The position numbers and the translations under genes were made by a program. This document shows, piece after piece, positions 18,286 to 49,221 of a stretch of DNA of 64,000 nucleotides. Source of the stretch: Monocercomonoides exilis PA203 (taxonomy: Eukaryota; Protista; Preaxostyla); assembly GCA_001643675.2 (NCBI GenBank), contig LSRY02000060.1, forward strand, positions 372,001 to 436,000. The letters are read 5' to 3'. A model generated the notes under the pieces. That model was not told the DNA's origin, ran no database searches, and saw only the letters and a program-made list of their open reading frames with translations. Position 1 is the stretch's first letter. Each line of letters opens with the position of its first letter.

Positions 18286-19101
18286 TCAAGCGATGGTTGG
18301 GACGAACTGTGCCTGAAACTTGGGCGTTCTCTTCTTTCCCCTGAAATCTGTGAAGCTCCTGCTGTATCCCCTTCTCTGGAGCTGTCTGTATACAAATCCC
18401 TGAGTGCTCTTTCCCGAACTGCATCTTCTCAAAGGTCCACTTCTGGCCGTTGAGGGACCGAAACCTGCTGAGGAATCGGGAGATGCACAGTACCCTGCGG
18501 CATCTCCCTCTGCTTGAAAAAAACTGGTGCTCTCTACCAGCTTCTTCAGGTTCTCCGGAACCTCTTCGGACATTCCTCCTTCAAGAAACCCTTTCGCGCT
18601 TTCCCAACCCGATTGGGGTGTAACCTTAAGAAGGTTAATTCTGCTAATACAGTCAGCAATAAGTGCATAGGCGCAAAACAGTCCTCTCAATCGTTCTTTC
18701 TCTTCTTCCATGAGGTGCGCCTTCTCTTGTTCCTTCACTGTTGGTGATGCGATTGCTTTGGCTGCTTCAAAGCCCGATTCTAGGTCCGGCTGGAGGAGTT
18801 CAATTGCTCGTCTCGCTTCTAGTGAATCTCTTCTCCCCTTTGTTGTGATGGCTGTTCTGGCTAGAGCATTCCAATTTGTGTCTGTGTATCCCGTGAAAAA
18901 TTCCTTTTCTCTCTCTGGAATAAATGTATTCAAGATATCTTCACTCATTCAAATTGAGCCATTTTTACAAAACTCCATGAACTTCTTCAGCTCACCCACC
19001 TGTCTCCGGGGTATCAGACATTCATCCGGAAAATTTCCAAAAAAGTCTTGTGAGTTTTCTTCTTCTTCCCTCTCTTATGCACTTCCGGAGTCACCTTCGG
19101 G
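18286..19101 (-). pseudogene. DIRS gag-like ORF, interrupted at 19101
   Basis: 220-aa ORF upstream of RT in the same GC-rich block; assigned by position only. Confidence 0.6.
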
Positions 19102-19599
19102 CATAGGTACATTTTGTACCAGTTTGGAAAAGAGTTATTAATAAATATAATAAATATTATATTAATGCATATAATTATTGCAGAAAAACTGTGGATGGAA
19201 AAAGTCGAAATTCTTCCATCATAAAATAAAAATTTTCTGGATTTTTCACAACCCATAATATTTTTCTTCAGATCATAAAGAATTATAAATTTAATATTTC
19301 AAAGAATAACGTTTCGATATGAATTACATATGATTTATTTTTGTTCAAATCATTTATATTTTTAAAATGTTAACTGATAATGTCAAAAAACCAATCGAAT
19401 GCTGTTCTTTTCACAAAATAACTTTATTCGTGCATTTATTGTTTTCGGAAAAATCGAAAATGAAATCATGTGATAAATAATATATAATACAACAATTTAT
19501 TGATGATTTATGAGCGTTTGTTCAAAATTGGTTTTAATATTCTCTCAAACGGTTTTTAATTTATTTTAAATTTTTATTGATTTGACTGAATAAGAAATG

Positions 19600-20315
19600 A
19601 CACTTTTAGTGGAGGAAGAGCTTTCTTGTTTGAGTACTCATTCTCAATATGCTCTCTTTCAGATCAATAATGTGGAGGGATGCGATGTTTTGGAGTTCCG
19701 GCTTCATTCAAAATGAGAAGAGTCCAATTTATTTCGTGCTCAGCAGTGTCATATGGCGGAGGATTGCGCTTTAATCCTGATCAATCAGCATCCCCAAGCA
19801 ACAATCATTGTTTTTATTTCTTCTTCTTCCACGATTGCATGAGTACTAATTCCACTCCATATGGTCATGATGTGTTTTTTCAAGATCTACACAATCACTT
19901 TTCATCAAACAATCCGTTCAAAGAATCATGCACAACGAATACAAATGAGAAGAGAGTGTGCTATTATTATAATAGTTATCAGCATACAGAAAAGAAGGAT
20001 TGGCTGAAGGAAGGGGTGAAAGATAGATATGTTGGGGTGAGTGGAAGTGACTCGAGCAATCTGTGTGGGATGAGCGAGGCAGCACCTTGCAAGACGGTGG
20101 GGCATGCAGTGTGGTTGAGCATAACACAGCTGAGCTCGACAATCACGTTGCTGGGTGGGAGGCATGTGAGCGAAGAGAAGACAATCAGTGTTGGGGAAAA
20201 GAAGATAATAATAACAGGGAAAGGGAAGACGGTGAGTGTGATTGGGACGAATTCTCTTTCTTCGACTTCGACAGCGCTCTTCAATGTGACGAGTGGACAG
20301 TTGGAGTCGAAATAA
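19600..20315 (+). pseudogene. Beta-helix family gene fragment (cargo)
   Basis: YGGGL, YGHDVFF, RYVGVSGSD...CG....PCKTV motifs; truncated at both ends. Confidence 0.7.
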
Positions 20316-23300
20316 TTATGCTGGCCAAGATAACAGAAAATCCCAGGTCTGAAGGAGAGCATCCAATAAAGGCATCCGTATTTGTGCTGTCTCAGCCACA
20401 GCTGCCAGAACTGCCGTTGAGATGAAAAAACAAAATTCTGCTGCAGCCCCTCTTCTCCACGCTGCACTCCTCCCAATCTCCGTTTTCATTGCTTCCATCT
20501 TTTTCCCCGCTGTTTTGGCACACACAGAAACCCGGATCATCGAAAAATTCTTCTGTTGCGAAACATCCCCAGATGCACCCTGTTGAGAAAAAAAATAAAG
20601 AAAAAAGAACATTAAAAAGGTGTAACACTTGAACGGGTTCCTCGAGAGGCAAATAAAATAGAACACATCCACCAGTATGGCTGAAAAGATAACTTAGCGA
20701 AAAGAAACAACGCCACCCACCAACATCAATCTACCCCACAAGCCCGCTCATCGGGCAAACTCACAACAATTTGCAGACACTAAGCATTGAATGAGGCACA
20801 CAAATATTCTATATGCAAGTCAGTCCTTGGACCAACAAAATGCAGGCTAAGTTCGAAGGCAGCCCAGCATCCGTGCAGCCACGACCTTTGGAAAACCGTA
20901 TGAATATTACGAATGATTCAGTGCGCATTGTATTAAACAAACATTTGTGTTATATAATGTTTGGTTTTAAAGTTTATAAAAACAATTTGAGTTACGAAGG
21001 ATTCATTGGACTTTATTTTAATTTTTTTTTAACAACTGCTTCAAAAGCAGTGAAATGTTGATTTTTTTTAGGTCAAACAAAATATATACACAATTCATTT
21101 ATCAAAATTTCTGTGAACGCTAAGTCAAATACAGAATTAAACTGATTACGTACCAAACAAAAAATGTTTTCAATTGAACTGAATAAAATAGGAAAAATGG
21201 AAAGAAAAGAAAAATATAATGTGAAAGAAAAAACAGAGAAAATTGAGAAAACAGGAAAAAAAACAAGGATAGTCACCGCCAAATAGACAAGACAATTTTT
21301 GTGAATTTTCGAAGACATTTTTATTTTCTCTCTGAATTACATCAATCTCATGTGTCGACGCATTTCTTTTTCTTCTTCTTCCTCCATCACTTTTTCCAAC
21401 ATACTCCACACCCTCCAATGTTCCATATTTCATATTTTTTTCTTGCCCTTTCATTCGTCAGCTCACTCCACTATCTCTCGTCCAACTTGTCTGAACCTTC
21501 CGCTGATAACTCAAAGAACTGACTCTTCCGTTAGTGCTCCTCTTTTTCAACTCGATTTATTAAGGCTCAATCAGGACCCGGTTTCTGCCCCATAGCTCAC
21601 CACTGCTCTTTCATTTTTTATTCCTCTATCCGCCTTTTCCGCTATCATATCTCCGAAAAACGAATCTGCTGTTGTCTCCATCATCATTGCTAACAATCTC
21701 AACAAGAATAGATATATCTCCATCAAGCACGTTTTTGCCCTTTTCATTTTTCCAGCTCCATATCTTCAATGCACATTCTCATTTCTTTCTCACTTCTTCT
21801 TTCGATCTTCCATTCAATCCTAAACAAAGATTTCGCATTCCAATAAAGCTCTGTTCAATACGCTTTGCATTTTTCACTCTATCCATCGGACCATGCTCAA
21901 GTTCACATTCATACACATGTTCCTATTCTTTTCTTCTTTCCAATTTCCTTCAACACCACAAAAAGCTTATTACCAACTGCCCATTTCCTCTTTGTAATCT
22001 TTGCCTTCAATTATTTTATCCGTCACGCATTCGAGTCAATTGCTTGTCATAGAACTTAAAAATCAAAATGAAGAATTTGCGAATAACAATATCATAACGA
22101 TTAACAACTGGCAAAAATATAAATTCTTGAACTTAAGAAAATTATCGCCAAGGAATATTAATTCAATTCAACAGTTATATTTAGGATTTGTATGTTCCTG
22201 CTTCAAACGTTAAATATGTAAAATAATATCAATAAAACGAATTAAAAAAAAATCTCTCAGACAAACATTGTCCATTGAATTTTTTCAGCTACAACAGCAA
22301 TGTGAAGTTTCCTTGAACTCTTCAAAGTTAACAAATTATATATTAAATTCTTTATGATCTGAAGAAAAATATTATGGGTTGTGAAAAATCCAGAAAATTT
22401 TTATTTTATGATGGAAGAATTTCGACTTTTTCCATCCACAGTTTGTCTGCAATAATTATATGCATTAATATGGGTGATTTTTTTTGAAAGCATAATTTTT
22501 GAATGAAAATTTTCGAAGTGGAAAAAATAACATTGAAATGATTAAAAAACACATGTATTTTGCATTAAGATATTATTTTCGATAATATATTCATATAAGT
22601 CATTATTTTTCTTATCATAACTTAGTTCGAAGAAAGATCATTTTTTTTGATAATTGTGGAAAAAGAGAAAAAACAAAAATAAATATTTTTAAATGAATAA
22701 TCAAAGAATTGTGATTGAATATTAAAAAACAAAGTTGATTTGAGAAAATTCTGAGAAATCCATAATTTAATTTTGTTTTCAGTTATATCTAATATTTGAA
22801 TTATTTGGAATTATGAAGGTTAAAAAGCTCAATAATTTCTTATTGAAGATTACAATTTGAGCATGATTGATTTATATTGCTTTTTTGAAATGATTGACAT
22901 GAACTATCATCAAAAAATGTGTGAATTGTTGATTTATTAAATTTTATTCGAAATTAAAGAATTTATTATTTTGTGCAATATTTTTTTAATTTTATTTATG
23001 TTATGAACGATCATAATACAATATAGGTCGATTCGAGTCGTTGAAGAGAAGCAATATATTTAATAAAATAATTGTATTGTTTTTTTGAATTATGAAACGA
23101 ATAATTGAAAAATAATAATGTCAAATCATGTAAATTGTATGTAATCATTTCGAACATTTTGGATAAAATGTGAAAAGTTACCGCAATGTTTTATTTTGCT
23201 ATTATATTATTTTTCATTGTTTTTTGTTTTTTCTTCATTTCAAACATTGCACTTTGTAATTTTTATTGAAAAGTTTATTATTTTTGAAATTTACACTTTG

Positions 23301-23699
23301 TTTATCACTGAAAAAACATTAATTTGTTAAAACTTAAATGAGACCTAATTTTTTTGATAAATTCGATAGAAGAACTAGTCAAACATAACACATCAATTTG
23401 ATTTCTCATTAAACATATAATTAACTTTAACAATTACAAAATATTTATTTCAATTTACCAGTGTACAGGTGAAATGAAGAAAAAAGATAAAACTTTAAAA
23501 AAAAGTGAAGAAAAATTCGTTTCATAAATGATAGCCAAAAAAAAACCTGTCCAATTGCAAAGCTTCATTTTTTCCAAACTTAAGGCAAATTAATTGTTCC
23601 AATTCAGTTTGCTTCAGAAACATGAAAAGCTGAAATAAAAAAATTTCCTCCAAGACTATTTGCTTTTCATTTCTGAAATTCGAAGAAGCTTATCCTATC

Positions 23700-24440
23700 T
23701 CTTTGAGAAACACGCAATAAATACATCCAACCTCCATAACACTTTTGAGAAATACAAGAATTAAACGAATTATTCTCAGTCTTGACTGAACTGATCGAAT
23801 TTCAAAAAATCACTCCCCCAGCATAATATGCTGTGCAGTTGTTGAACGAACAAAATTTCACTGAAAGTGTTCCTGATGCCTTGTTGTACATGAAAATAGC
23901 TCCACCATTTGAAGTTCCATTACTAATGGATGTCGATGTTCCATTTGCTTTTGACTCATTCCATACACACCAAGTGAATGAATTCGCCCCATTGTCTGTA
24001 ATCTGCTGTCTCGCTGGCTTCGACGGATTATCTTCACTCCCGCTGACTGCAACATTCTCAGACCGATAGCATCTGATAAATGAGGTGTTCGAGGCAGCCA
24101 ATGAAGATGAGGGGCTGTTAAGTGAAGGGACAATGCCCCCATCATACACATCCCACACCGATGAAAACTCACACCCACTCATCAGAAACACTCTTTGGCT
24201 CAGCCCTTCACCCAGATGTGATATTTTTTGTGGATTTGTGGAGATGTTGAAGAAGGTCAGCTGTGTGAGTGTCACAATGGGTGTCAAAGGCGGTGCAAGA
24301 AACGGGGCTGATGAAACACAAAAAGATGAGAAATCTGACTCGCTCACCAGAACACTCCCTCCTCCTTCTCTTTCTTCGTCTCTTCCTTCTCCACCTCTTC
24401 CTTCACCACCTCCTCCTTCACCTCTTTCTCTTCCTCTCAA
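23700..24440 (-). pseudogene. Beta-helix family gene fragment (cargo)
   Basis: VSSAPFL, VWDVYDGGIVPSLN, NGGAIFM, CSFNNCTAYYAGG motifs. Confidence 0.7.
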
Positions 24441-27400
24441 TAAAATATTTCTTATAACCCCAAAAATCTTACAACCCTTTTCTTATCTCTTTCTGCTGAA
24501 AATCTAATGAATCTCATAAAAAAATATAACAGACCTTCGCTGTCAATGCATTTTTTTAATTAATAATCCTATAAAGCTCTTTCCCAAGTTGAATCCACCG
24601 ATTGCCCTTCAGTCTCCATCTTCTGATGTTGTTCTGCTTTTCCTCGCTGTTTTAGAAAACGCAAGCAAAAACAATTTTGTCCAAGCAGGTGAAAAGAAAA
24701 AATCAATAAATCATATAAAAAATTGTCAAATAATATAATTAATAAAAATATCATACCTTTTTTATCCTTCAATCTCGCCAACTTTTGTCAAAGAATCGCT
24801 GCATTCCTCGTTTACTCATCCATTCCGTAATCTCCGGCAAAAACAAAACATTTTACAACCTCCGTCCGTAAAGATGTTCCTTTTGGTTAATATTCCGAGG
24901 AGCATTCCCATCTCCTTTTTTGAATAATTCTTTGTTGAACTGACTTTCCTCTATTTTTCTCCAAAATCCCTTTTCTCTTTTTTCTTCTTCATGCCCTCCC
25001 TCAATTCATATTACCATCTCATTCCCTTCTTTCTGCTCTTCTTCCAATGCTCCAAAAAAATTCATTCTTCTATTTCCTCTTGTTTTCCTTCTTCATCTCT
25101 TTTTCTTTTCCCTATCTTCTGCTTCAATTTCCGCTTCTTTTTCTTCCTCCTCTGTATCATTAATTCCTTGATCTCATTTTTCGCTTAAAATAAGATTCGT
25201 CCTATATGTCTTCCAAAACCTTCTTAAAATTTTTAATCTTCTTTTCCATTTCATTCATTTGCATTTCGCCCCAGCTCATTTCACTCAACGTTCTGCAATT
25301 GTCATATCCTGACTTCTTTTAATGCATCCAATATCCTCTTTTTCCGCATTCCTTGTTCATTCATTGTCGTTGAACACTCATTCAAAAAATCTAGTTTCAT
25401 AAAAAAAATAATATAGGAAAATTTATAATTAAAAAATATAAATACACACCGTTATAATGATCATTCTTCACTGATTTTCTTCTCCTCCTCCAAATATTTC
25501 TCCGTTTTGCCAACAAAACCCATCTGTCTCGTCTTCGTTTCCTTTCTGCTTCCTCAAAAAAAAATCAGCCAAAACCCAATTCTGTATTCTGCTTCCACTC
25601 AAATAACTCAGCCAGCTACATTCTATAAAAAAAACTAGCAATGAAGAATATTTCATCTGATAAGCGCTTCTCACCCCTTTTCGCTGTATCGACTTTTTCT
25701 TCTCCACATTCCCTCCAAAATATCAACGCCCTTCCACCAAATATCGCAACCCCTTCGCACAAATCTATTCCCCTTCACTCCCTGTCACTTCTTTTCACAG
25801 CATCTTTCTTCTAATCAAAATTAAATATCTCCATATTTTGCCTCTCTTTGGTGCAAAACATCCTCTCGTCGTCGGCCCCTCATCTTCCTCTGTCTCCATA
25901 CCACCAATGCAAAGTGCCAGCGCTGATGTTCCTTCTTCCTGTCTTCCTCAGCCTCCACCTCCATCCCTTGCCCTGCAAATGTGAGGCGCGACAAAACGGT
26001 TCACAAAATAAATTATATAAAAATATGAAGAAAAATTTTCTTCATTTTTTTTTTCTTCAACCCCATTTCCCCCTCTACTTGTACATCCACAAAAACTTCT
26101 CCCCCTTGCTCTGCCTCATATGAACCTTCCTCTCTCTCCCTGCATTTGAAAAAAAACCATCCCTTTTCCATTTCTTCTCCATTTCCTTTCCAATTCTTGT
26201 CCTCTCCTCCAAAGATAATATATTCCATTCACTCCACTCATCTTCAGCCCTTCTTCTCTTCCCTTTTATTCCACCTCCTCCACATCAAAATCCTTTTCAC
26301 AAATAATAAACGCAATTCCCACACCTTCCAACTCACAAAAATCTCAGAAACAACCCCTCCCAACCTCATCCCAATCCATCTCCTACACATCTATTTTGCC
26401 TCTTAAACCTCCAAAAAATACGTCTTTCTCCCTCCAAAAAAATATTCCTTTATCGCTCCTTTCACCCTCTCAAAACCCTGTTCATTCTCAATTGCACAAA
26501 TCCATCACCCCATTCCATAAATCCATCCTTTTACAACCACATTGTCTTCATATGCCCATTCAGCCACAGTGCATCGAGTTGTGCCCCTTTTCTTGTGTGA
26601 CTCTTATTCGTTATGGAAAATGATCAAACAAATCTCAAATGCTCAAGAAATATCTACAGAATGAAAATTTCATGTGACCAAAAATGCAGCTGGGCTAAAT
26701 GAAATATTTCTAGTGATGAAAAAGCAGCATCAACAACTCTTTTTTTATTGATGGAAGATGAAATTGTTCATTTTGATTGTTGGATGGCTGTGGGGCTATG
26801 ACATTTTCAATGGAAATGAGAAAATTTTAATGTATGCAATTTTTATTGTTCTATTTGTTGTGAATATATTTACATCTGTAACCTCTCCAAAGTCGTGATT
26901 CAAACAATTTATAAAAAATGGACAATTTATTCCATGCAGAGCAGAACAGCGGAAGGGGGCCAAATGTTATCTTACAAATATATCATTGGAGCATGATATT
27001 AATTTATCATAAATGTTTATGCAACTTTTTTTGGACTCAACATGCGTGATGGATAGAAATACGACGAAAAATGAATTTTGATGGAGCAGAAATCAACGAG
27101 GTTGGAAGATGTCCAAGACAAAAAGGAAGAATGTCCAATTTCTATGAAAAGTGAGCGTTTTTTAAAAAGAGGAAGAGGACGTTTACAAAAATATTTTGTT
27201 GGAAAGATTGGGACAGATGACTGAAACAGGACTTTGGAGGCAGCTAGAGCCGAGCAAGGTGCCTTTCTTGGGATAAGAAGGACAAGACATTGATTTTATA
27301 AACAGAAGAGAGCGATGAAACTGGTTTTCATTGGTTGGATTGAGAGCCGTTAATACGAGAAAAACAGACAATTTGGTGTTATACAAGCAGCTGGAGGCAA

Positions 27401-27774
27401 ATGATAGGCAAAATGGATTTGAGTCATTTTGCTATCGCCTTTGGAATTGCATCATCGAGATTTCTATGCTGGGGACATCATACAACAGAAAGTACTGAAG
27501 ACTGAACTCGACATCATTATCTTTTTCTTCTTTCTCTTCAACTTTTTTATCTTTTCTTCTTCTTTGTAGTCGTCTTCAACACCGAGAAATACGAAATTAA
27601 TTTTCCCCCACATTTTTGTTCATCATTTTCTTCACCTTCTTTGCCATATTCAGTCTAGTCTTCTTCATCCACTTCTATTTTATTTTCTATCATCATCTTC
27701 ATCTTCCGATTCTTCTGCTCCCAGCAGCTTCACCAACACCACCACATCCTTCTCCTTCTCCTTCTTTATCAGCG

Positions 27775-29200
27775 AGCCGACTGAGCGACATGTTCGTCTG
27801 AATGAGGGTGCCAGTTCTGGGAGTATTTGCAGGCCTGTTTCACAGGCAGTCGATTTGGTGCTGAATGCGGAGCATGTTTCATTTAGTGTCAGCAGCCGTT
27901 CATAGCAGCTTTTTGGGATGGGATGGTGAGGACGTTGGAGGCTGCACAGATGTGGGAGGGATAAGGAAAGAGACCGATTGCATTCACATCATCGCTTTCC
28001 TTTTTGTCAGCTGTTCAACCATCTTCATCATCTTCTTCTTTTGCTTCTGTCTGCAGCCTCTGGGCAATGAGGCATTTTTAAGGAATGGAGATGAAAAAGG
28101 CGAGCAACACAGGGCATTGGTGGAGCCAGAGATGGAAATGGCAGTTTGTGTTGCTTGGAGCAGAGAGCGAGAAGAATGAGAGAGAAGAGGAAGAAGCAGA
28201 GAAGGAAGCAGAGAGAAAAGAAGTGATGTACATTCCTGTCTACTCCTTTCCGATGAGGTTAGCCACCCGCTGTGCAGCATCTACCTTTCTCGTTAAGCAT
28301 TGAGCACTCAGCAAATCGAGTGAAGATGCACATTATCTCATATCCTCTTCCACACAGACGCCACACCGACTCCACAGTCACATCCATCGGGTGGTGTCTG
28401 AAGGGCATGGGCAGCTGCCATATACCCAGCGATGACAGCACAGCAGCTGCGGAGGCTGCGGCAGATTGTGCATGGTGCAGCTGTAAAGCGCTTTCCGCAG
28501 GAGCGACTGGCCAAGCATCTCCGGCACGATGTTCGCCTCCTCTGCCGCGTTATCTCTTGTCAGGATGGCCTCGCGCAGCTGATCATTGCCCTCGATCTTG
28601 CCGGGGGATGGAACATTGGGCTGTGTGCTGGCAGCACAGCCACTTTGTTTGATGTGTCTTGAAAGGGCGAAAGGACTTCAGGAGAAGACTGCTGCGATGG
28701 GAGAAGTCATTCATCAGAGAAGCGACGGAGCGGAGAAGCGATGGAACAGAGGAGTGGAGAGGACGAGTTGTGTGGAGGATGAGTGGGGAAAGAGGAGGGG
28801 AAGGAATTTTTTGGAAGTGGGTGAGAAAGATGAATGAAAGGTGCGGGGTGTTGTTTTCAGAGAATTTTGTGAGGTGGATGGAGGAGGAGAATAACAAAGT
28901 CAAGAAACTGAGAGCAGCCATCACTCTGGAATTGTGAGGGGAAAGGGGAGGGCGATGGAGAAGAAAAGGCAGAGGAATGAGCAGTGGATGGCCGGGTATG
29001 GTGATTTGGATGAAAGGATCAGGTTCAACATTTTGGAATGAGATTTTGTGAAGAGTTTTAAGTGAACTGTGGAAATGGGATGTTTTTGGAAATGTTCAAT
29101 ATCCTGTGAAATGTGATTGAATTGCCAAAAGAATTGTTTGTCACATCGTTTATTCGCCTTCTTCAATTTAAACTTCTTCATCTTCCTCGTCTTCCTCATC
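27775..29200 (-). repeat. Dispersed repeat, copy 2 (inverted relative to 2551-4030)
   Basis: Identical translated ORF 28921-29199 vs 2552-2830; homologous remainder. Confidence 0.9.
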
Positions 29201-29675
29201 GTCATTGTTTTCGTTTGTTCTGTCTCAGCAAACGAAATTATATGTAATTTTTATGCTTCTTGATCATTATCTTCTTTCTCTTCACCGAATCATTTTTATG
29301 GATTTTTGTTATTTGAGTCACTCGAGAGGAAGCAGTTACGAAAATTGGGCTTTATTTTATTATGGAGAGCAGAAGCGAAACAAATTTATTGACGTTGCGA
29401 TAATCAGCGAAGATGAAGAAAATTTGCTTTATTGGAAGAAAGAAACTATTTTCAAGAAAGAGAAGATGTGAAAGAAGAACTGTGAGAAAAAATATTGAAT
29501 AAAATAGTTTTTAATTATTCGTGATATCGTGTTATTCAGTATTTGTTGAGTAATTATTTATTAAATTCACAAATAGTTGCGATATGTTAATTTTCAGAAA
29601 ATAATTGAAATATTTGAATAACCATTATTCAAATTATCAAATTCGTCAATAACTTTTCAGATTTTTTCTGAAAAA

Positions 29676-32600
29676 ATGGAGCAAAGGAAATTCAGCAACC
29701 TATCATATTCTCGGAAGAGTGAAAAATGCTCTTTCATATGGAACGAATTGAACGAAAAATCTGGAAATGATGCTGTCAGTATGCTGCAATTCATGTTCAC
29801 TCACACAAACATTGGGAAAAAACTAAGTGCAAAGATTCAAGAAATATTTGCTGGTATACAACTCTATTTTCCTTTTTTAATTGTGAGAGTTACTTACATT
29901 TTTACTTTTATTTGGTAGAAAAAGCCAATTATACAATTCTTCGCTTGGCTTCTGCTTTCAACAGCGAAACCAATGTTCATACTAAAGTCACTTTGCTGAA
30001 ATGTGTCTGCCATGAGTACAGTCTTTCCCAATTGCAGGATTATGGATTTGAATGCACAAAAGGCAGTTACAATCACGCCAAGCAAAACAGTTCAAGCACT
30101 TCATTTGATATTACTCCACCAAGAAAGCCTCCTCAACCACCTTCGAAACGCAGTGTGTTTTTTATTTTTTGAATTTTGTTTTGATTTTCGTCTTATGATT
30201 AATGATTTTTTGTTCTTTTATTTTAAGAATTATGTTATGAGGACGAACAAGCGTTTTCTAACTTCATCAACGAAAATACCACAGAATCGTGTGAAAATAT
30301 TTATATATCAAAATGTGTACGTAAAGGTTTAATTCTATTTCTGTTTTGTTCATATATATTGATATTAAATTATTTTTAAATTATATTTGTTTCCTTTTTT
30401 TCTAATAAAATAATAGATTCAACAACAATTATTGATGATAATTTTTCCATTATTAACGGTGAGGAAGGAATGGAAATTGACGTTGACCCACTTGAAAATT
30501 ACTTTCAGGAAAGTCATGTGTCAGATTTTTCAACAATTGATTTTCAAAATGATGACGGCATGGATATCACTACCGAAACTCATGAAGTTTCTTCTATAAA
30601 CTCTGCAATGGATATAGAAGAACCAGAGTTAATCTCTGTATCAGGATTATCCCATCAAAACCAGGAAGATGAAAGCGTTATGAATTTCACAAATCAACAA
30701 ACCATTCTTCCGGAATCCAACGATGAATCCTTGTTCATAGTGATCGAAGACGATTCAGAAGAAAATACGGAAGGTTTACAAGAAGATTCATATATATATG
30801 AGAGAGTGTTGAATCAATCTTCTTCTTTTAAACAAACAATGAATAAAAAGAACTGCGATTATACTATCCCTCAATTTTATCCTTTACCCAATAAAGGAAA
30901 TTCATGTTTCTTTGCTGCAACAATTCAGCTGTTTCGTTCAATTTTTTTCCACTCCGATAAATGCAAAATGCGGAAAGGTCGTTTGTCAATTATACAGAAT
31001 AGTTTATCTTTCTTGGTGAATCCTCAGCACACAAAACCAAAGAATAATCAATCTAATCACACATCGAAATGGACTGCGAATTTTGTCAAAAAATGGGAAA
31101 GTTTGCATAATCTTCGAACTGGTATTCAGCACGAGTTCTATGAAACATTTCTGAGCCTTTTTGATGATATATCATCAATTTATCCTTCATTTCGAAGTCA
31201 AATGGAACAGAAATTATGTTTTCCTCGGATATGCATCGATTGTTTTCATCGGAATGATGGTGTTGTCGAAACAACTCCTATACTGAGGCTGAATGGTAAT
31301 GATCTATTGAAGTCTTTCAACGAATCGTTTGAAATAAGTGAGGATAATATAAATAATAGAGATGCATTCTGCGAGTGTTGTTCAAAAAACACTCATCAAT
31401 TGACAACTTTATCAATCAGTCAATTTCCTCGTATTTTATCAATTTCATTTGAAACACTATCTGATTCAATTACATGTCCAACGAATGTGTACACAGTTTT
31501 ATCATTTCAAAATATCAATGGAAAAACAGTTGCATCCTCAAATTATGACTCAAATGCAATTAATTATAATTTGATTGCAGTGTTATTTCATAAAGGAGAA
31601 AAAGAAAATGGTCATTTTTATTCTATCTGCCATTCAGGAAGCTATGAAGAGTCATCAACATTTCAAAACAACAGTTGGTTCTTGTGCAATGATGAAATGA
31701 TTTCTATTATCAACAAGAATGTGGAAGATGAAATCAAAAGTCATTTGAAAAAAGACTCTCGGCCTGTGATGTGGATATACGTTCAAGTGAAAATAAAAGA
31801 AAATACTCACATTACTGAAATTCTATCTCCACCATTGATTCCATCTTTTCAAAAGAAGAATCCACATCAAGTTTTACACATAAACAATGAACCTTTTCAA
31901 TATGGAACTTTATCAAATTCACATCAACATGTTAATGCAGCTGCAAAACAACCATTTTCAAACGCAAATATCAATGAAACCCATGGAGAAAAAATATCAT
32001 TAGGAAATGATTCCAGTCACTCTTCTTCTTTTTCTCACTTCACTGATTCTGAGTCAAATCAATATCAATGTGCAAAGAATTGCTCTTCAATGCAAAAAGA
32101 AAAAGAAAACTGCCAGGAAACAAATAATTCATCTTATTCAACATCTCATTTTTCATCTTCACTTCACTTTCCACTTCACAATCAATTATGCTGCGAAGAA
32201 TACTTGAACAACAATCACATCATTTCTTCTCCAAACACTTCATTCAATCAATTTGACTTTCCATCCTCATCAAATTCTTCAATCAACATATCAAATTCAT
32301 TTCATTCTAATATCAGTGATTTCAATTTGAACTCTCTCTCACTTCTTCCACATCAACCTTGTGTTTTCACTACAAATAAAATTGCAGAAAAAAATATGAA
32401 AGATGTTCAGAATGACAAATCGATATCTCATAGCATTTTTGAGGTTTCAATCTCTCCAGAACCTGGAACAACATGTTCAAGCAATCAACAAGTTTTTATT
32501 GAAAACATTTCATCTTTCTCATCCAACCTTCCAGATCAGAATACTCAAACGACAATCAACTCATCAAAAAATTCATCTTCGAATTCAACGAATGAACAAA

Positions 32601-34013
32601 ACGGCAATTCGCACTCTTTGCTTCCACAATCAACTGTTTCAACAAATACTTCCTCAACAATGATGAATTCAATATCAATGTCTTCTGATGACATCATTCA
32701 CAGATTCGACTCCCTAAACAACAACACTTCACAACATCAAAAAACAACAAAAACGAATCCAATTCGACTCATTAACACTTCTAAATTACAGTTGTTCCAA
32801 AAAATGAAAGAAACAACAAATATAAAAATGTCTCGAAGCACGTTTTACAAAAGAACTTCCCACCTGAAGCGAGCGGCTCGGAGGACGGACTTGTGCAATC
32901 TTTGCGAAAAATACAATCATATGAAAAAGAAAGAAGAATTCTTGAGAACGAAATCCGAACAGCTTTCAGAAAAAGACAAAGAAATATTGAAGGGAATAGA
33001 GGATCACAGAAAACTTGCAACGAACCAACAACGTTATTATCGTCAAATGAAGGAAAATCTATCAATTGATGATGCACTCGTGCTTTTCGATTTCAAAGAA
33101 AATTGGTCCCTTCCTCTCAGGAGAAACCAGATCAGCAAGGACTATTACGACAAGTATGAGGTGTCTCATCTCTGCATAATTGTCTATACAGTGGACGAAA
33201 ACAAAAACAAGATGAAGCATATTTTCAACTTCTTTTCAAGCATTCTCTCACATGACTATCGTTTCGTTATTGAATGCTTGAACCAAGTGCTTAATAAACC
33301 GATGCTATCACAAAAGAAAAACTTGCATTTTGTTTGTGACACAGGACCACACTTTAGGAATTCACAAGTTATGCATTTTCTTCTGTCTGATAATTCAGCA
33401 GTGGTTCATGGAAAGTCTTCGACATTATCATTTTTCTGTGAAAAACACGGAAAATGTGAATGTGACGGAGAATTTGGATGCCTTGCAAACATAATGAACA
33501 TTCATCTGGATAGTGAAACTGTTATCCAAAACATCGATGATCTCATCAAGTTTTTTGAAGAACATCCTCATGATAGTGTGATTCAGGAAAAATCAATGTC
33601 AAACAATTCTCACAAAATCATTCGTCATTTTCTTAAGTTTGTTATTTCTTGCGGTTAATATTGTTTCTTATTAATAATGACAATTAATTTCAAAACTCTT
33701 ATTGCTTATTCTTTATAGATATAATCCAACAAATAAAATTTTGTGGAAAAAATTGGAAATCAATTCGATAAAGACATTTCTGTTCTACGAGAAAAGAGGG
33801 AATCAAATATATAGATCAGTTGCTTCGCCAGATAACTGTGAAGGATCTTTTTTGGTGAATTTCAAGGAAAAAAGAGTGAGAGATGAGAGAGTTAAAAAAA
33901 TATTTCAAAAGAGTTCAACCAATTCAGCAGAAGAGAGAATAGGAAATTACACCGAGAAATTATTGAAAGATAGAAGATTATTTGATATTAATCATTTCTT
34001 TGATAAACCTTGA
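29676..34013 (+). CDS. USP (peptidase C19) deubiquitinase fused to Sola-type DDD transposase; exons 29676-29853, 29919-30152, 30228-30326, 30417-33636, 33719-34013 (~1341 aa)
   Basis: Four GT-AG introns join the ORFs in frame (4026 nt). USP: Cys box LPNKGNSCFFAATIQ, QHEF, two CxxC, His box YNLIAVLFHKG...GHFYSIC...WFLCND. Transposase: SRSTFYK, TDLCNLC, DFKENW, SHD, CDTGPHFRN, FFCEKHGKCECDGEFG. Confidence 0.85.
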
Positions 34014-34162
34014 GTTTCTGTTTTGTTGTTTCTATTCCTTAAGTAATTCGAAAAAGAGAAGAGTTTTTTTGTGGTCTGTTGCTCAAGCTTTGTGCTTTTG
34101 TTTTGAACAAATGCTACGAAGTACCTCACATTTTTTTCATTTGAATGGAAAAAATTGGGGCT

Positions 34163-34239
34163 AGGCTGATTCCGTCCTGAAACTGTGCTGTGACCGGTCC
34201 AGCACAGTTTCTTGCAGGATTTGGGTCCAGAATCAGCCT
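34163..34239. other. GC-rich long hairpin downstream of the USP-transposase gene
   Basis: Nested stems AGGCTGATTC/GAATCAGCCT, TCCTG/CAGGA, GAAACTGTGCTG/CAGCACAGTTTC with a GACCGGTC palindromic apex. Confidence 0.8.
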
Positions 34240-34699
34240 CCCAGGACAGACCCTTCACATTCTTCTTTCCTATTTTGAATTACTTTAGAAATTTGTATTT
34301 TGTGTGTTTTTTTATTCAAATATGTCGACATATTTGTTTTTATGATCCAAGATAATTATTTATATTCATGTTTAAGATATTGAAAAAGGTTTCATTGTCT
34401 TATTGAGTTTTAATATTAAAAAATTGGATATATTTTATACTCATTGCATGAAGAGACACTTTGATTTGTTGCTCAGTTTGTGAAATCTCAAAAATTCATG
34501 TTTTTAAAACATGATAAGGCAGGGGGATGGATGTGAAATGATTTTCAACAATTACAAAATAGCTCATATTTGAATTGTTGAAAATCTTATTCAAGAATAA
34601 TTCTAAATATATTCAAGATGAAATCAATATTCGTTGTGCTTCTTTGTCAAAGTGCAGATTGCATATTAATAATTCTTTCAGGGATTCAGAGCTTTATCA

Positions 34700-36200
34700 G
34701 TGAATGAAGTTGCGATAGGGGGATGCACTTCAGACATGTATCTGGACGAAGAAGAGCTGCTGAAGAGAACTGTGAAGGACCAGTACGAGACAGTGTTTAT
34801 ATCTTTTGCCTGGGACAATCACGAGGACAGCAAGCAGTGCGGAGGTTTAGACGGGCCGTGCAGCACGCTGAGTGAAGGACTGCTGCACATCATTCCGTCG
34901 TTGTTCTCCCAGCAGCTGATCTCCAGCCGCACCGCCATCTTGAGCAGATGCTATGTACTGAATGTCACCATCCACTCGCTTGAATCGCCTTCTCCAGCGC
35001 ATGTGTTCCTCAACTCAGCAATCCCACATAGCAGCAGCATTATTGCAACCTCGGAGAAAGTTCGGATCGAGAGCTTGTCGTTCTCTGTTGGCTCCTCCTT
35101 TTCGTTTTCAGGAGGAGCACTCATCAGCGAGACAAATGGGCAGCTTTATCTTTCGTCAGTCCTTTTTGCATCTGGCATGCTTTCAAATAGCATCCACCAC
35201 ATGGCCCTCAACTCGTCGCTGCTCAGAGTTGCAAGTGGGCTTCTGTTCATCGATAATTGCACCGTGTCTGAAATTTCATTTGAACAACCATTGTTCCTTC
35301 TGATTCGCAGCAACAATGTGTCTCTGGCAAGTCTGAATCGAAAGCATATTGAGCTGTCATCCAATCTATTTGAAGTTGGAGAGTGCAAGAGTGTGGTGAT
35401 TGATGACGTGGTTGTGGATGGAGTGAAGTCTCGCAATGGCAGTGTCAATTCCATTTGCGAAGATATGCCGGGAGTTGTTTCCTTTTGCAGTTCTTCCATC
35501 AGAAACTTCAGTTGTAACTCTTTTAGTGCGTGTGCCCTTTCCGCATCTTTTCCTTCTGCCAGGATAAACCTGTCAAACTGCTCGTGCTCAAATTGTGTGC
35601 CGTTGTGGAAAAGGTGATCATCGTGGATGTCAGCAGTGCACTTGACATTTCGATGCGCATGTGCGAGTTTGTGGGGAGGCAAGTAATTTCCAGCAGTGAA
35701 GAGAGTGTCTGCAAATGGAATGGATCGCTCATCAATTTGTCGCATTTGGCAGCATTGATGAAGGACGCTACAATATCGAATTCGTCATCAGGCGGATTGT
35801 CGTTGGCATCAGGCAACATGACAATCGAGAAAGGCGAGTTTTATGATAACAGCCCCTCGATGCCGAAATAACTGTCACTCCGCCGGAACATCTTCTGCTG
35901 CGATTCGGCTTCGTTGGCAATTGGCAGCTTGAAAGGCGAGGATGGCGTGAAGGACAGCACTTCGTTGTGGATCATGAGCGAAGATTGCAGTACTGAGGGC
36001 TCTGCACAGGAATGACCTTCTCCGTTTTTCATTCCTCATCTGGAATCAGCATGTCTGGCTGAATCTGGGAGAGTGGCCAAATAAAAATTTAAGGAATCAT
36101 TTATCTTAGAATGCGATCAATCTTTCAAATTGATATGAACAACAAAAGATGAACAGTGAATCGAGTGGTAGCCATTTGATGATAATAGCTATTTTTTCTG
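34700..36200 (+). pseudogene. Beta-helix family gene fragment (cargo), frameshifted
   Basis: 305-aa and 113-aa ORFs; CKWNGSL...MKDATISNSSSGG matches CKWDESL...MKDTAISNSPEGG at ~44360-44450. Confidence 0.75.
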
Positions 36201-37940
36201 AAGCCGAAATTGCAGGAGCTGTATCATATTTATTTATTGCATTTCTTTTTGGATTTTCATTCCCACTAAATAATCAACCAAATAATTGAATGAATTGTCA
36301 CAGATTGTCATGATTTGACAGAATTTTTCGAACTTTTCGGCAAGCATTAAAATTATTAATATTTTCAGTCATTATTTCTCACATTTGTTTTCAGTTTCGA
36401 AATTCTTCAAAAAAGAAAATTGATGTACCATATTAATCATTCTTTTTTTTTGAAATAACAATCTGTTTCAAAAAAAGAAATGAATAAATATCTTTGAAGT
36501 GTTCATAATTAAATAGATAGGAAAAAAGTCATTCATCTCAAAAACTTCTTTCAATAAGATGCTATTTGCTCTGTGAAAGTTTCTGCATGTCAAAAAAATT
36601 CATTTATCAAAAGAAAAGAAGATATCATAGATTTGTGTCATTTTCATTTTATTTGGCTTTTATTATCAATATATATTATCTAAAATATATCAAATTAAAA
36701 AACATGATTGAATTTAATACCTTTTACACATTTTTAAAAACACAATGACATTATCAAAGCATGCACAGAATTAAATTATGGTGTCGATGATCTTGTTGAT
36801 TTATTGAACAATGAAATCACAGGTTTGGAGATTTTTTAAAATAAAATAATAATCGAGATATAAATATGACAGTTTTTATGGATTCAAAAATTAAGTTTTG
36901 AAAGATATTTTTGAATTAATTTATCACCCCGAAAAAAAGTATGTTTTCGAAAAGAATCACCCATATAATATTTATTATATTTATTAATAACTCTTTTCCA
37001 AACTGGTACAAAATGTACCTATGACCACCTTCGCTATCTTTTTCTTTGTCCCAACTCTTCATTGGATTCTATGTGCTTCTGCCATTAACAACCATCTATG
37101 TTTCTTTTTTGTGATCATATCTGAAAGATCTGATTCCGACTCCGATTCACTTGATCTCGACCAAGATCTTCACCTTTATCTTTCTCTCTTTTCCTTTCTC
37201 ATTTATATTTTCTTCGTATCAACTGACTGTTTTGACCATGTTCAACTTCTTGAAAGTTCTTCTATCATCTTTTCTACTCTCATATGTCAATGTGCAAGAT
37301 CAGATTCCTTCTCTTCGCTATTAATTCGTTCGATTCTTCAACTTTCTTGATCCATTTCAACAACGTACGATAAGATTGAAAACAAATTTGAAAATTTACT
37401 ATGTGTGATCTTTAACCACCCAAAAATGGATCCAATTCTCATTATCGAAGAGCAAATCTGCTCCTCTTGTTTGCGTATTAGCTCTATTGAGAATTGAGAT
37501 GGTTGGAGAAACGAATGAAATAATGAACATAAAAACACACACAATTATATAAGTAATTTCTATGAATGGCGAATGTATCTGAGGATGGAAATGATCTGTT
37601 TGTCAAATTGTCAAACTTGACAAAGAGCGTCACAAATATTTATCTTCCATTTGTGTCTGGACATCAGGAAAAATTTCATTAAATTTATTGAGCGGCTTTG
37701 CTGGGAATGATAAAGAAAATGCAATTCCACTTGTTTATTTCTGGTAACCATTTGGTTTGGAAACATCAATATGAAGGGAAGAAAGAGAAACTTAAACTTA
37801 ATTCTCTCATTATCCTTGCTTGTCAATTGAACATTCATTGGATCAATTGACCTAAGGAAATGAAAAAAACTAAAACATCATTTGAAAAGGAATTCTCAAA
37901 AAAAGTGTTGATCTTGGTTGAATTTTGATTAGCTCAAATA

Positions 37941-39950
37941 GGGTTATTATTTCATCCTAACACTTTTTTTTATTCTGACTTTAAAAAATAAAGTGTAAAA
38001 ATTCAAAAAAAACACAGTTATAAGAAAACAAAATCAGAATTAATTCTTCTGATAACTTTCCTTTTTCCTTCAGCTCGGTTTTATGCATGATCTTTCTTTT
38101 CATAATTTGAATCATCGTTTTCACCGTAAAGAATTTTTCTTTCTATTTTTTTCTTATTATCCACAACAGTCTTCACTTCATCTTTCCACTTTTCATCCAT
38201 TTCATTTTTCCTTTCAGTATTCATTTTCAAATGATTTTCCCATTTCTCTGAAATATTTTCGTTGGTGATAACAGTTCCATAAAAGTTGAATCCATTTCTG
38301 CGAGTTGGAAGAGTATTAATCGAAGATTCAGGCAGTTTCAAAAGAACTGGCCCAGAAGAATTGTGTAGCACACCACTTCAAACGAAAGCTTTCTGAATTA
38401 CAGTAGGAGATAATGCAGTGTGGATGGCTTGAGGCAGAACGTCGGAAATAGTTGCTTGTTTTGAAAAAAAAAGAAGAAGATGGAACTTCATATCAATTTG
38501 ATAACTCAGACTGGAAACAGCAAGCGCTCCTTTGTCAAGCTGTTGATAGAGGAGTGTACTGAGTGGCACGAAGGTTTAAACGTCGATTTGTTGTTTTTGG
38601 AATTCTCACCAGATCGATGGATCTGCGTAAGATGCATGCGAATCAAGAAGGAGAAGAATGTGTTCGTTTTGAAGTGACATGCACTTTCTTCTTTCGATGA
38701 TGGAAGGTAGAAGAACGGTGAGAGCATACCTTTTAAAGCACTCGTAATCCATCCAGCCGCTTCCATTTGCCCATATCGCAAGCGTTGGAGATAACAGGCT
38801 TTTCAGCTCATCTGGCAGGTTGAAACTTGGCCACAAAATGACAGAAGGAAAGGCATATCCGTCCGATACAACAGTTGCCACGAATGTTGAATTAATCATT
38901 CTCGGTGGTTCTTGTGTGAAACCTGCTTTTGTGTCTGTTGTATGCACTACAAGCTGTTTTGGGACTGTGGGAACGCGCGTTAAAGATTCATCGATGTTTA
39001 TAATTAAAGCTGGGTTGTAATGGTATTTTTCGTGCAGCTCGTCGAGTGTTTTGAACCAGGGTTTTAAAACACTTCTGCACGAAACAGCCAGTCTGTTAAT
39101 GTCCAGATTCTTCGGCGTTCCAGTCTTCAGCTCCGGATGACGCTTGACAAAGCCGTAAGTTGCAGTCATTGAAATTTCTGAAAATGGTGAGTCTTCATCG
39201 TTGTCGTTTATAACATTTTCAATCTGAAAAACAAATGATTAAAACATATAAATAAAAATTAAACAAACCAATTCTCTTGTTTTTTCAAAGTTAAACATAT
39301 TCCAGACTTTGCTTCAATATGAATAATGTTTAAAACTCTTTGTTCCTTTTCGCCCAATACTGCTGCAGGTCTGCCAACTTTTCCAACTAGCCTTCCTTTT
39401 CTCAGTGCTAGAACTGCATTCTTAATCCCTGTGCGGCTGAATTCCTTGGAAGTGATAGCATCCGTAATGCGAACTACTCAATCAACAACGATATGAGCCA
39501 TTCGATCCAGCCGACTGTGATAATTCCTGAACTTGTTCGAAGACATTGCCCACTGCAGTTTTTTCTTACCTTCTTTTAATTTTATTTATGTTGATATTTT
39601 CATTTTTTAATGATATTTTTTTTGTCATAATTATTTTTTGTTTTTTAAAATTTAAATGAAATAAAAAAAATTGAAAAAAATAACATTTTAAACAAACCAT
39701 AGGTTTTATGCCCCATGTCACACTCCACTTCCACACAGAAGTTCAATGAAGGGGCTTAACACTCCTATCTCCCCCTTTTGCGAAATTGGGTTTGTATCAA
39801 AATGTATTTATTTATTTCTATGAAATTCATATATATACCAAAATTTTTTTTGAAGAATGAAATTGTGGGAAAAGTCAATGAATAATTAAAAAATAAAAAG
39901 GTCTTGATAAAAAAAAGATCAAGAAAAAATTGTAACACTAAATGAAATTT
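37941..39950 (-). mobile_element. Decayed pogo/Tigger-like (DDE_1) transposon, second family member; right end approximate
   Basis: TA|GGGTTATTATTT terminus; ORF 38606-39169 with FVKRHPEL, INIDE, GWMD, LLLLDSHAS. Confidence 0.8.
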
Positions 39951-41029
39951 CCAAAGGAAAATAGAGCATAGGTTCAAACGCGTTCCTTTTGCAATTTGCG
40001 CCTTTGAACCCTCAAATTGTAACGAATTAATAGATAATAATTATTTAAAAACTTTTTATGGACCGATTTTTCGAAAAAAAATTTATTTGTTGAAAAAAAT
40101 GATTTTTGAAAAATGACCCATAAAAACATGAATTTCATTGAAAAATATTCAAATAAAAAAGAAAATGTGATTTTTGGACATCCAATGTGCTTTTATTTTA
40201 ATTTAAATTAATTTTATTAATTAATTTTCATCATAAAAAATATAAATCATTTATAAAAAATTTTATTAAATATCTTTGATCTAACCCACAATAAAATATT
40301 TGATATTTGGTAAACTTTATTATACCGTTTTGGTTAAAATAGAGCATAAAAGTGTGTAATTCGTTCACTTTTATATGTTAATATAAGTATATTATTATAT
40401 GCGAACTTGTATAATATTGAAAACAGATTTTATTCACAGTTACATTAAAGTGTGCTTTTTGACTTTTATTTTCATTAGCGTGCAGATGTTAATTTCAAAA
40501 TTGGTTTTAATGGAACGCAAAAGGTATTATATGATTCATTCTATCAAATAAATGTTCATATTGTTTTTTTCTTTCAAATAGTATCTTTTCCTTTGATATG
40601 TTAATGTATTTTTATATGTCTAAATTTTAATGAAAAGTTCCTTTTGTTAAATTTTCAAATAAAGAAAAATTTTCATATTTCGATCAAATTTCTGTTCCTG
40701 CTCACCAAATTTCACTGTCATGAAAACAAAATCTTGACAATGTTAAAATTAACATACTGGTGAAAGTAGGTGAGTTGGAATAAAATTTAAATGAAAATAT
40801 AAAATTTTTGTTTTATTTGAAAATTAAACAAACGGAACTTTTCAAAAAAATTAAGCCATATTAGACTCGATCAAAACATGTATTAATGAATAAATCTTGT
40901 AAAAATAAACAATAATCACACAAAACAATTCAATATTGTATTATAAAAACAATGAACAAATAAAAGTTTGTCATTTTTATGTTATTTTAAAAAATAAAAC
41001 GAAAAAATAAATTGATTTGACTTTTTTGT

Positions 41030-44000: not shown

Positions 44001-44471
44001 TCATCTGTGCCACTTCTGTCATTCCGTGGAGAATCGGGTGCGTCAATTGTTGAAACCAGAATGTTGAATATCGAGTGTGAGGGGGAAATTGTGAGAGTTG
44101 GGGAAAAAGCGAAGGTAGAGATGAAGGAAGTGAAGTTTGAGTATATTTCAGTGGCTATTGAAGGAAGCGTGATGAAGATGGATGGAGCTGAAAGGGGATT
44201 GAGTGTGCTGAACTGTTCCTTTGTGAAATGTCGGAGCACAAAAGAGAAGGGAAGAATGATGGAGATTTGTGAATGCTTGGATGTGAAAATAGACAATTGC
44301 CTTTTTAATGGGAGTTCAAAGGAAAGAAAAGAATATCATTTGAATGAAGAAGAGGAGATGTGCAAATGGGATGAATCTCTTGTGGATGTCGTGAAGAGTT
44401 CTGTTTTGATGAAAGACACAGCAATCTCTAATTCACCAGAAGGTGGAATAACAATGAGTGAGAAAACATAT
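41030..44471 (+). pseudogene. Large beta-helix family pseudogene, truncated by a MITE
   Basis: Consecutive ORFs 41042-44477 separated by stops and frameshifts; family motifs CG....PC, GGG...ID, VDLIPLITFY. Confidence 0.8.
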
Positions 44472-44710
44472 GGGTAATTCTTTTTGAAAAGTCGCAAATG
44501 TTTAATTCTCAAATAAATAAAAATATTCATATTTTTATGAAAATTTTGTTAACGTATACTAAACTTCACCAATATGGAATCAAATTCTGGATAATGCCAT
44601 TTCAAACGTTCTAAATAAGATTCGTGAGTGGAAACAGAAATTTGAGCAAATTATGAAAAAAAATTTTTTTTGAAAATTAAACGTTTGCGACTTTTCAAAA
44701 AGAATAACCC
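44472..44710. mobile_element. 239-bp MITE, 36-bp TIRs, flanked by ATAT
   Basis: ATAT|GGGTAATTCTTTTTGAAAAGTCGCAAATGTTTAATT...AATTAAACGTTTGCGACTTTTCAAAAAGAATAACCC|ATAT. Confidence 0.85.
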
Positions 44711-45004
44711 ATATATATAAAAGTCATAAACTTTTAACATTATTTACTGAGACTTTTTCACTTTGCAGAAATTACAATTAACATTTATTCTTATTGTTTA
44801 TCGCAATGCAGTAACTATTTATGATTATTTAAATGATTTCACATTTAATCTTGTTGTATTTTAAAAACATGTATATTTTTTTATTCATTATGTTGAGAAA
44901 ATATAAATTGAAAATAAATATTTTCAATTAAAAATTAAAAATTTCAAAGCAGTTTCGATATTTTTACAAAAAATATTCCCATAACTTGACTATCATAATT
45001 TAAA

Positions 45005-45579
45005 TTGAAAAATATATCTTCCAATTTCTGTCACATGGAGACTCAATATAACAAAGAAGATATTCAAAAATTAACTTTTTTTGAATTTATTGTTATGTCA
45101 AATGGAAATAACAAATTAGCTCTAGAAATTTTGTTATTGATGGGATGCATTAAAAAGTCCTTTAAATGCTGGAAATGCGAAAAAGAGATGAATCTGACGA
45201 TGAAAAAAACCCGAATGCGACTATTACACTTTTAAATGTTCGTTGTGTGGAAAACTATACAGTTGGAATCATGAATCTTTGTTTATGGATTTCAATTTAT
45301 CGCCTTACTACGTCATGACACTGTTTTGTCACTTTTGGTACAAACATTCTGTGAATAAGGTTGTGAAAGAAACAAAACTATCAAAGAACACAGTCTTGAG
45401 CTTTTTCAAAAGATTACGTAATATCTGCTGTTATCTTAAAGCGCTTGACACCGAAAAAATTTGAAAAAACAGAAAAGTTGAAATGGATGAAACACTGATT
45501 CACAAAAGAAAAAATGGGGTGGAAAGAGTTAAAGAACAGCAGTGGCTGTGGGGAGCAGTTGAAAGAAAAGTGGAAGGAA
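45005..45579 (+). pseudogene. Merlin / IS1595(ISXO2)-like transposase 5' fragment
   Basis: CxxC (CWKC), HTH-like region, then KVEMDETLIHKRKNGVERVKEQQWLWGAVER (VEIDE...KRK..GR....WVFG.VER motif); truncated at 45580. Confidence 0.8.
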
Positions 45580-45903
45580 GAGATATGGTATGTCAGCTAT
45601 AGATCCATCTCGATTAAGATCTATCAATATTATCTATTTATGAATATCTGATGGTTATTATCATCTTGTATAATAAGTTGGAAGGCGATGGTAATATGAT
45701 GGAGATCGTTTTATGAATATCTGATGGTAGTTGTCATTTAGTGTAATAAGCTGGAATAGGTGATGATAATAAGATAGAGATCATGAGGAGATTGCTGATA
45801 CTCTTAGAGGTTTCTCATGATTAGATATTCAGTGATGTTCTATAAAGATGGAGTTATTGATAGGTGTAATCGATATGGATCCATAGCTGATATACCATAT
45901 CTC
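45580..45903. repeat. 324-bp fold-back unit with 37-bp inverted ends and an internal ~73-bp tandem duplication
   Basis: GAGATATGGTATGTCAGCTATAGATCCATCTCGATTA vs TAATCGATATGGATCCATAGCTGATATACCATATCTC (3 mismatches); TTTATGAATATCTGATGGT at 45637 and 45710. Confidence 0.85.
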
Positions 45904-49080: not shown

Positions 49081-49221
49081 TTCATTCAAATAAAAAAATC
49101 TCTTTTCAAAACAAATACATTTCAAAAAACGTAAATTAACGGTGAAGATGATGTTGGTGTAAATATCGAAAATGAACGACAATTGAATATTTTCACATTA
49201 AATGTATTTTGCCCAATTTGC

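Follow-up and report, generated by a model that had tools for sequence, protein, structure and literature searches.

Organization of the locus

The stretch of DNA analysed here, referred to as the window, comprises 64,000 nucleotides of contig LSRY02000060.1 from Monocercomonoides exilis PA203 (assembly GCA_001643675.2, positions 372,001 to 436,000). It contains a transposable element of 14,491 bp at positions 22472–36962, assigned below to Sola2 and called the giant element, which is flanked by two copies of ATAT (22468–22471 and 36963–36966). Within this element lie the terminus and interior of a second family, designated family B, with pieces resembling host genes; a predicted transposase gene with an internal ubiquitin-specific protease (USP) domain; a GC-rich, pseudoknot-like motif; and a further piece of cargo. 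The giant element is itself inserted in a smaller, Merlin-like element.

Boundaries and target site

The terminal bases of the giant element are GGGTGATT at each end. Its own left end occupies 22472–22596 (plus strand), the initial ~29 bp of which form an imperfect terminal inverted repeat (TIR) with 36934–36962 (minus strand). The two ends agree at 21 of the first 25 positions and diverge beyond. The termini read GGG...CCC; the rule for Sola2 termini is GRG...CYC.

When the giant element and one copy of ATAT are removed in silico, the reverse complement of approximately 19100–19295 is restored, with 1 mismatch in 186 bases over the join. In BLAST comparisons, the left flank matched the 19100 region over 137 bp (96% identity, E value 8e-59) and the right flank over 64 bp (98%, 1e-24). 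No closer pair of TIRs with a target site duplication (TSD) was found around the transposase gene within the window. A first-pass annotation of this DNA had proposed a 4-bp TSD, imperfect TIRs and some 10 kb of non-transposase DNA; the ATAT on either side and the matching ends bear out the former, and subtraction of the 4,338 bp of the gene from 14,491 bp leaves approximately 10.2 kb. That annotation had also placed the empty target site of the element in the same window. The sequence is indeed restored, but the site is the paralogous TIR of an interrupted element and not an allelic empty site. The observation is confirmed, and the element was correctly delimited.

The main part of the interrupted element lies at 19100–22471, its left TIR being the supposed empty site, and the displaced tip of its right TIR lies at 36967–37025. 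The 8-bp TSD copies are at 19092–19099 and 37026–37033. This is a non-autonomous element of 3.4 kb with TIRs of ~200 bp and a GG terminus (one substitution at the right end), and the giant element interrupts the right TIR 60 bp from its tip. Its own two TIRs are nearly identical, as against 73–82% identity to ~10 paired relatives, from which we infer that the insertion is younger than the last equalization of the host TIRs. Five open reading frames of this copy gave no Pfam hit. It is classed as Merlin-like by its ends only. More than 100 copies of Merlin, with 8-bp TSDs, have been described in M. exilis (PMC8101967); the interrupted element resembles these in its GG terminus and 8-bp TSD, but differs in the length of its TIRs (23–29 bp in most families of M. 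exilis) and in having no recognizable transposase. A beta-helix-like open frame is present within it at 19671–20312.

Sister copies and mobility

The genome searched comprises 82,301,135 bases in 101 contigs, designated here by C and a number; for the detailed comparisons 50 loci were read, in addition to coordinate-only searches. Both ends of the giant element were found 14,567 bp apart in C46 (643269–657835), with ATAT on both sides, and 14,554 bp apart in C7 (1684210–1698763), with ACAT on both sides. The three full copies, including that in the window, accordingly have 4-bp, AT-rich TSDs (ATAT, ATAT and ACAT). As ACAT is non-palindromic, the C7 copy provides an independent determination of both the ends and the length of the TSD. 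A diverged copy in C21 (376264–396187) has both ends, 19.9 kb apart. Identity of the left end (22472–22596) to that in the window is 98% in C46, 93% in C7 and 80% over 103 bp in C21.

The flanks of the sister copies are unrelated to those in the window, except for a second copy of the Merlin-like element near that in C46. Since sisters with both ends sit in other flanks, one of them with an ACAT duplication, it is apparent that the whole unit has moved, and that it has done so repeatedly together with its cargo. The first-pass annotation had raised the possibility that like-ended copies never contain this transposase; the sister copies do carry the gene. Its frame is open in the window and C46 copies and contains stops in those of C7, C86 and C21. 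Two further copies (C7:1835697 and C86) align to the window from position 30320 onward only.

The Merlin-like neighbour in C46 (638687–642390) lies at a distance of 0.9 kb from the giant element's left end there and is 78% identical to the window copy; this may reflect coincidence or a shared insertion preference. The copies at C7:1842333 and C86:5191, which are near-identical, both cease to match the window at position 30320, just within intron 3, owing to either a truncation or an insertion. Among the loci examined, ATAT precedes 24 of 33 GGG-type ends.

Transposase gene and assignment to Sola2

The predicted transposase gene (29676–34013, plus strand) encodes 1337 amino acids in five exons, at 29676–29853, 29919–30152, 30228–30314, 30417–33636 and 33719–34013. 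The introns are of the GT–AG type with compatible phases, and there is no internal stop; the splicing is predicted, and the exons were checked singly. The core of the transposase (32750–33636, plus strand) contains a DxCxxC-H motif and a DDD triad with codons at 33089, 33338 and 33464, its motifs being DxCxxC, H, DFKEN, DTGPHF and HGKCECD. The Asp residues of the triad are conserved at 98–99% across 151 homologues. The structure predicted for the core (predicted local distance difference test, pLDDT, 93) has its best fold matches with IstA, Hermes, Mos1 and retroviral integrases, and the model accordingly places the DDD triad in an RNase H-like fold. Related cores number at least 132 in the genome (421 candidates), many of them within open frames of more than 900 codons. 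The crude ratio of nonsynonymous to synonymous differences (pN/pS) of the core was 0.14–0.29.

A full-length search returned two metagenome proteins without Pfam domains. Pfam contains no Sola model, and the motifs were compared with those of Sola2_DFa-2 and Sola2_PPa-1 by eye, unscored; the motif series, including the N-terminal motif in exon 2, agrees with both. This published series and the RNase H fold support the Sola-type core proposed in the first-pass annotation. By every feature that could be tested (TSD, TIRs, triad and fold, motifs) the element reads as a member of Sola2.

An internal deubiquitinase domain

A USP (peptidase C19) domain is predicted at 30884–31777 (plus strand), with a Cys box at ~30896, a His box at ~31610, an Asn-Asp at ~31688 and two CxxC pairs. 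Residues 139–436 of the long exon match the Pfam UCH domain (E value 1e-13; 51.7 bits, against a cut-off of 23.9), and the Cys, His and Asn-Asp residues align to those of human USP34 (E value 1e-7). With the USP as sole query, a word-index search gave no match. A profile of the N-terminal part of the transposase, made from 78 USP-less homologues, matches exon 2 (29919–30152, plus strand) upstream of the USP (profile positions 51–127; E value 2.9e-10 among 1490 frames) and then the core. Because of this order of matches, the USP is placed inside the predicted transposase, between its N-terminal part and the DDD core, rather than appended at one end. The insert amounts to ~700 amino acids and consists of the USP plus acidic and Ser/Asn-rich linkers.

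The arrangement is not peculiar to this copy. In 52 of the 53 closest copies a USP occurs no more than 2.5 kb upstream of the core, and one is also found upstream of many cores of ~40% identity. The catalytic boxes are retained between subfamilies that share only ~55–60% identity, and pN/pS in the C-terminal half of the USP (crude, against four sisters) was 0.16–0.42. No USP was detected in the 151 database homologues, many of which are fragments.

By analogy with the Helitron VTD domains, which are active deubiquitinases and have been suggested to shield transposition proteins from the proteasome (PMC9741609), the USP would probably deubiquitinate the transposase or its complex in cis and guard it against degradation. 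Otherwise, it might alter the ubiquitin marks carried by neighbouring chromatin or by repair proteins.

An RNA motif downstream of the gene

A GC-rich motif of ~90 nt (34159–34247, plus strand) lies ~150 nt 3′ of the stop codon. Subfamilies that share only ~65% identity in their core DNA are ~90% identical in this motif. The predicted structure consists of two stems and a five-pair pseudoknot helix; 98.9% of cells are paired, as compared with 27–45% in slid controls. Four pairs show changes on both sides in what is a small and related sample, so that the covariation is supportive, but not proof, of a pseudoknot-like structure. At E values up to 1, Rfam yielded no match to the motif.

Nested cargo

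Position 22597 (base 126 of the giant element) is preceded by ATAT and begins a ~460-bp TIR of family B (22597–23052, plus strand), which is in register with the termini of free family B elements. The terminus reads AAG in the window and GGG in C46 and C7. The family B interior, with its host-gene-like pieces, follows at 23053–29284 and is collinear with the sister copies (91% identity in C46, 79% in C7 and, in part, 80% in C21). It includes a beta-helix-like (Chlam_PMP-like) gene fragment at 23805–24482 (minus strand) and, as the first-pass annotation had noted, a dispersed repeat (27772–29200, minus strand), which BLAST aligns at 83% to 2551–4028 and which also occurs at several C42 loci. 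A second beta-helix-like piece, at 34685–36212 (plus strand), is annotated as the uncharacterized MONOS_10256. It is 83–87% identical to paired copies on C10 and C51; the C10 copies are at 86–87%, versus 80–83% for the same piece in the sisters.

Family B is represented in the genome by 54 pattern hits, which include 19 inverted pairs spanning 2.2–10.7 kb with TIRs of ~460 bp. Free copies hold the same interior pieces beside the TIR, and none of the 53 closest transposase cores lies within a family B inverted pair. No second family B end was found in the giant element or its sisters, and the family B ends that C46 and C7 carry at +125 are likewise unpaired. Approximately 6.7 kb of the cargo is therefore regarded as a one-ended nested passenger of family B, a separate, non-autonomous family with GGG ends. 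That the outer end, and not the family B end, is in use follows from the TSD in C7 and the restored target. Direct capture of the left cargo by the giant element, as first envisaged, gives way to nesting for most of that DNA.

Both of the beta-helix fragments reported in the first-pass annotation are present, but the fold label is a lead from language-model features, by which both cluster with right-handed beta-helix proteins (0.91–0.94), and Pfam gave no match for either. Divergence of the left fragment between sisters is patchy. Identity between the window and C46 is 96–100% for 1.4 kb, falls to 69–80% in the fragment, and then returns to 95–96%. Patchy identity exactly within the beta-helix pieces suggests that these have been overwritten, in patches, by other members of the beta-helix family. 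Many of the cargo matches lie within inverted pairs, which may themselves be cargo.

Interpretation and alternatives

Taken together, these data make it very probable that the locus holds a potentially autonomous Sola2 cut-and-paste transposon with an internal USP and a nested passenger. Its transposase would bind the GGGTGATT ends and insert the element by way of a staggered cut of 4 nt. A member of family B, probably moved in trans by a Sola2 enzyme, would have entered an ATAT located 125 bp inward of the left end and then lost its own right end, becoming a passenger. The gene pieces that it carries would be non-functional and overwritten patchwise by recombination with the huge beta-helix family of the host. 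The window copy would represent a fairly recent insertion into the right TIR of the Merlin-like element.

Several points weigh against this interpretation. No copy of the giant's subfamily free of family B was seen, and the nesting order is for that reason one that we only infer; no intact parent gene for the cargo was identified. Assignment to Sola2 is a matter of motif reading and not of a scored profile, and the USP, with its intact catalytic residues, has a predicted activity and a putative substrate. The claim of autonomy in the first-pass annotation finds support in the intact gene model, but not in expression: neither transposase transcripts nor splice joints were detected in two RNA runs, which are synthetic-community metatranscriptomes with little of this organism, and coverage within the element was confined to 35812–35954, where it was weak. 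Among the short-read contigs listed, which cover 31400–37300, none bridges the right junction, and none of those listed bridges either junction.

The lack of a bridging contig among those listed and the abundance of repeats in the region are points in favour of an assembly artefact or a segmental duplication; an origin of this kind is nevertheless exceedingly improbable and largely refuted, as three copies have unrelated flanks and their own TSDs, and the target is restored. The order of nesting could also be the reverse of that proposed, with the inner GGGTCATT end as the original left end, the family B elements as deletion derivatives with a duplicated end, and the outer 125 bp as a later recruit. 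Family B elements do match the left interior of the giant element at 72–79% with their order preserved, and the inner end likewise follows an ATAT. The right end, however, fits the outer end at 21 of 25 positions and the family B end at only 16 of 25, in the diverged C21 copy the outer end is present and nothing matches the family B pattern at +125, and the TSD in C7 shows the outer end in use. The reverse order is considered unlikely.

It is slightly less likely again that the cargo is under selection, whether as a source of useful RNA or protein or as a reservoir of variants for host surface receptors. In keeping with such a role, both pieces have been retained in four or five copies, the transposases of which show 11–20% divergence at silent sites; the cargo still contains open frames of 226 and 314 codons, and one piece carries a gene annotation. 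Against it, the sisters share ~80% identity in the cargo, which does not exceed the level at silent sites, and both pieces are truncated and of patchy identity. Equally improbable is a USP that is carried along without function or is expressed as a gene of its own. Its apparent absence from the 151 homologues, many of them fragments, implies that Sola2 works without a USP elsewhere. Against this, the USP shares one open frame with the core and has transposase sequence on both sides, its catalytic boxes are conserved, and its pN/pS is well below 1.

The reading of a Sola2 transposon with an internal USP and a nested passenger could be extended to a distinct Sola2 sub-lineage in which the USP and the pseudoknotted RNA are both required for transposition, while recombining cargo feeds variants to the host surface-receptor family. 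This extension is speculative and on balance doubtful. If it is true, the USP might, for example, counter a ubiquitin-based host defence, and the RNA might process or regulate the transposase message.

Relation to known elements

Size was considered as a novel feature of the element and rejected. The Sola2 elements DFa-1, DFa-2 and DFa-3 of Dictyostelium fasciculatum and PPa-1, PPa-4 and PPa-5 of Polysphondylium pallidum are 10,254–15,292 bp long (Bao and Jurka 2013, PMC3627910), so that the 'giant' of the first-pass annotation is large for a cut-and-paste transposon but within the published range for Sola2. The slime-mould elements likewise have short, partly imperfect TIRs, AT-rich 4-bp TSDs and extra DNA beside the transposase, together with the same order of motifs: STFY, RTDxCxxC, H, DFKEN, D-x-x-x-HF and HGKxxxD-x-x-F. 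Sola2_DFa-2 begins with GAG, but Sola2_PPa-1 does not. The spacing of the triad is 83 and 42 in the giant element and, by hand count, ~87 and 43 in DFa-2 (PMC3627910). The giant element is unlike the slime-mould elements in its USP-bearing split of ~700 amino acids, its broken host-gene cargo in a nested element and its structured motif after the gene; the slime-mould passenger is an intact Fanzor1 gene (PMC3627910), none of which was seen in the giant element.

Proteases accompany transposases in several other superfamilies: OTU and Ulp1 with Ginger1, Ulp1 with Mutator, and OTU and VTD with Helitron. In another metamonad, Trichomonas vaginalis, XP_001314237.1 combines transposase_11 with peptidase C19 (PMC2836005). 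The giant element shares with these a ubiquitin or SUMO protease encoded with the transposase, although the superfamilies differ; the Ginger1 protease is C-terminal, whereas the USP occupies an internal position and is fixed throughout a family of more than 100 copies. No paper on a USP in Sola was found. Pack-MULEs, which carry gene fragments between TIRs and are moved in trans (PMC6431247), match family B and the Merlin-like host element in these respects. They belong to another superfamily with another TSD length and are mostly 1–2 kb long, and in the present case a Pack-type element rides within a coding one.

Each of the protein and cargo traits has a precedent in another superfamily; the novelty lies in an internal USP, a nested cargo of Pack type and the RNA motif. 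The locus itself contributes the restored target, nesting at three levels and the USP's internal position. It provides a delimited, apparently intact element for a question open since at least 2010, namely the use of ubiquitin proteases to DNA transposons: a change of one residue would inactivate the USP and leave the DDD core untouched. It also illustrates one route by which cut-and-paste elements may grow, through retention of a one-ended nested relative. In the M. exilis genome, DNA transposons account for 4.5% and unclassified repeats for 35%, and Sola is not named (PMC8767320); the giant element helps to explain the unclassified fraction, which overlaps receptor-kinase families (PMC8767320).

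Other GGG ends and further features of the window

The first-pass annotation had suggested that the giant element could be the master for GGG ends preceded by ATAT at 616, 11785, 44472 and 50952. All four ends are present, but AAAT, rather than ATAT, precedes that at 11785. The end at 616 belongs to the giant's type (19–20 of 25 positions), and only 16–18 of the first 25 bases agree at the other three. Those at 44472 and 50952 belong to 240-bp MITEs (miniature inverted-repeat transposable elements) with their own ATAT duplications, and that at 11785 is assigned to a 240-bp MITE family as well. A master role for all GGG ends was rejected on account of these matches, the MITE family and the many candidate transposases, as any of the at least 132 related genes could serve them.

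One such MITE is inserted in a dead copy of the transposase gene on C11. GGG-ended insertions also occur inside decayed USP-transposase copies, at 2223–2477 of locus L009 and near 804 of L014, and in L009 a second and shorter copy of the RNA motif lies near 57–197.

Elsewhere in the window, a stop-free frame at 61619–61870 matches the Sola2 N-terminal profile (E value 0.002), pointing to a possible second Sola element that leaves the window via the tandem array at 62373–64000. A 15.7-kb palindrome (39967–55694) has 6.4-kb arms of 99.9% identity, which hold two kinds of 240-bp MITE, and a DUF5906/VapE-like primase-helicase frame at its centre (46738–48111). Related elements at 7103–9103 and 37938–39510 (67–71% identity) have GGGT(A/T)ATTATTT ends after TA; the latter contains a frame (38609–39169, minus strand) with a weak DDE_1 match (E value 0.008), suggesting that both are pogo/Tc1-like transposons. 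A 752-codon frame at 9348–11606 (minus strand) has a predicted GTPase domain (MMR_HSR1, E value 3e-6) and coiled coils.

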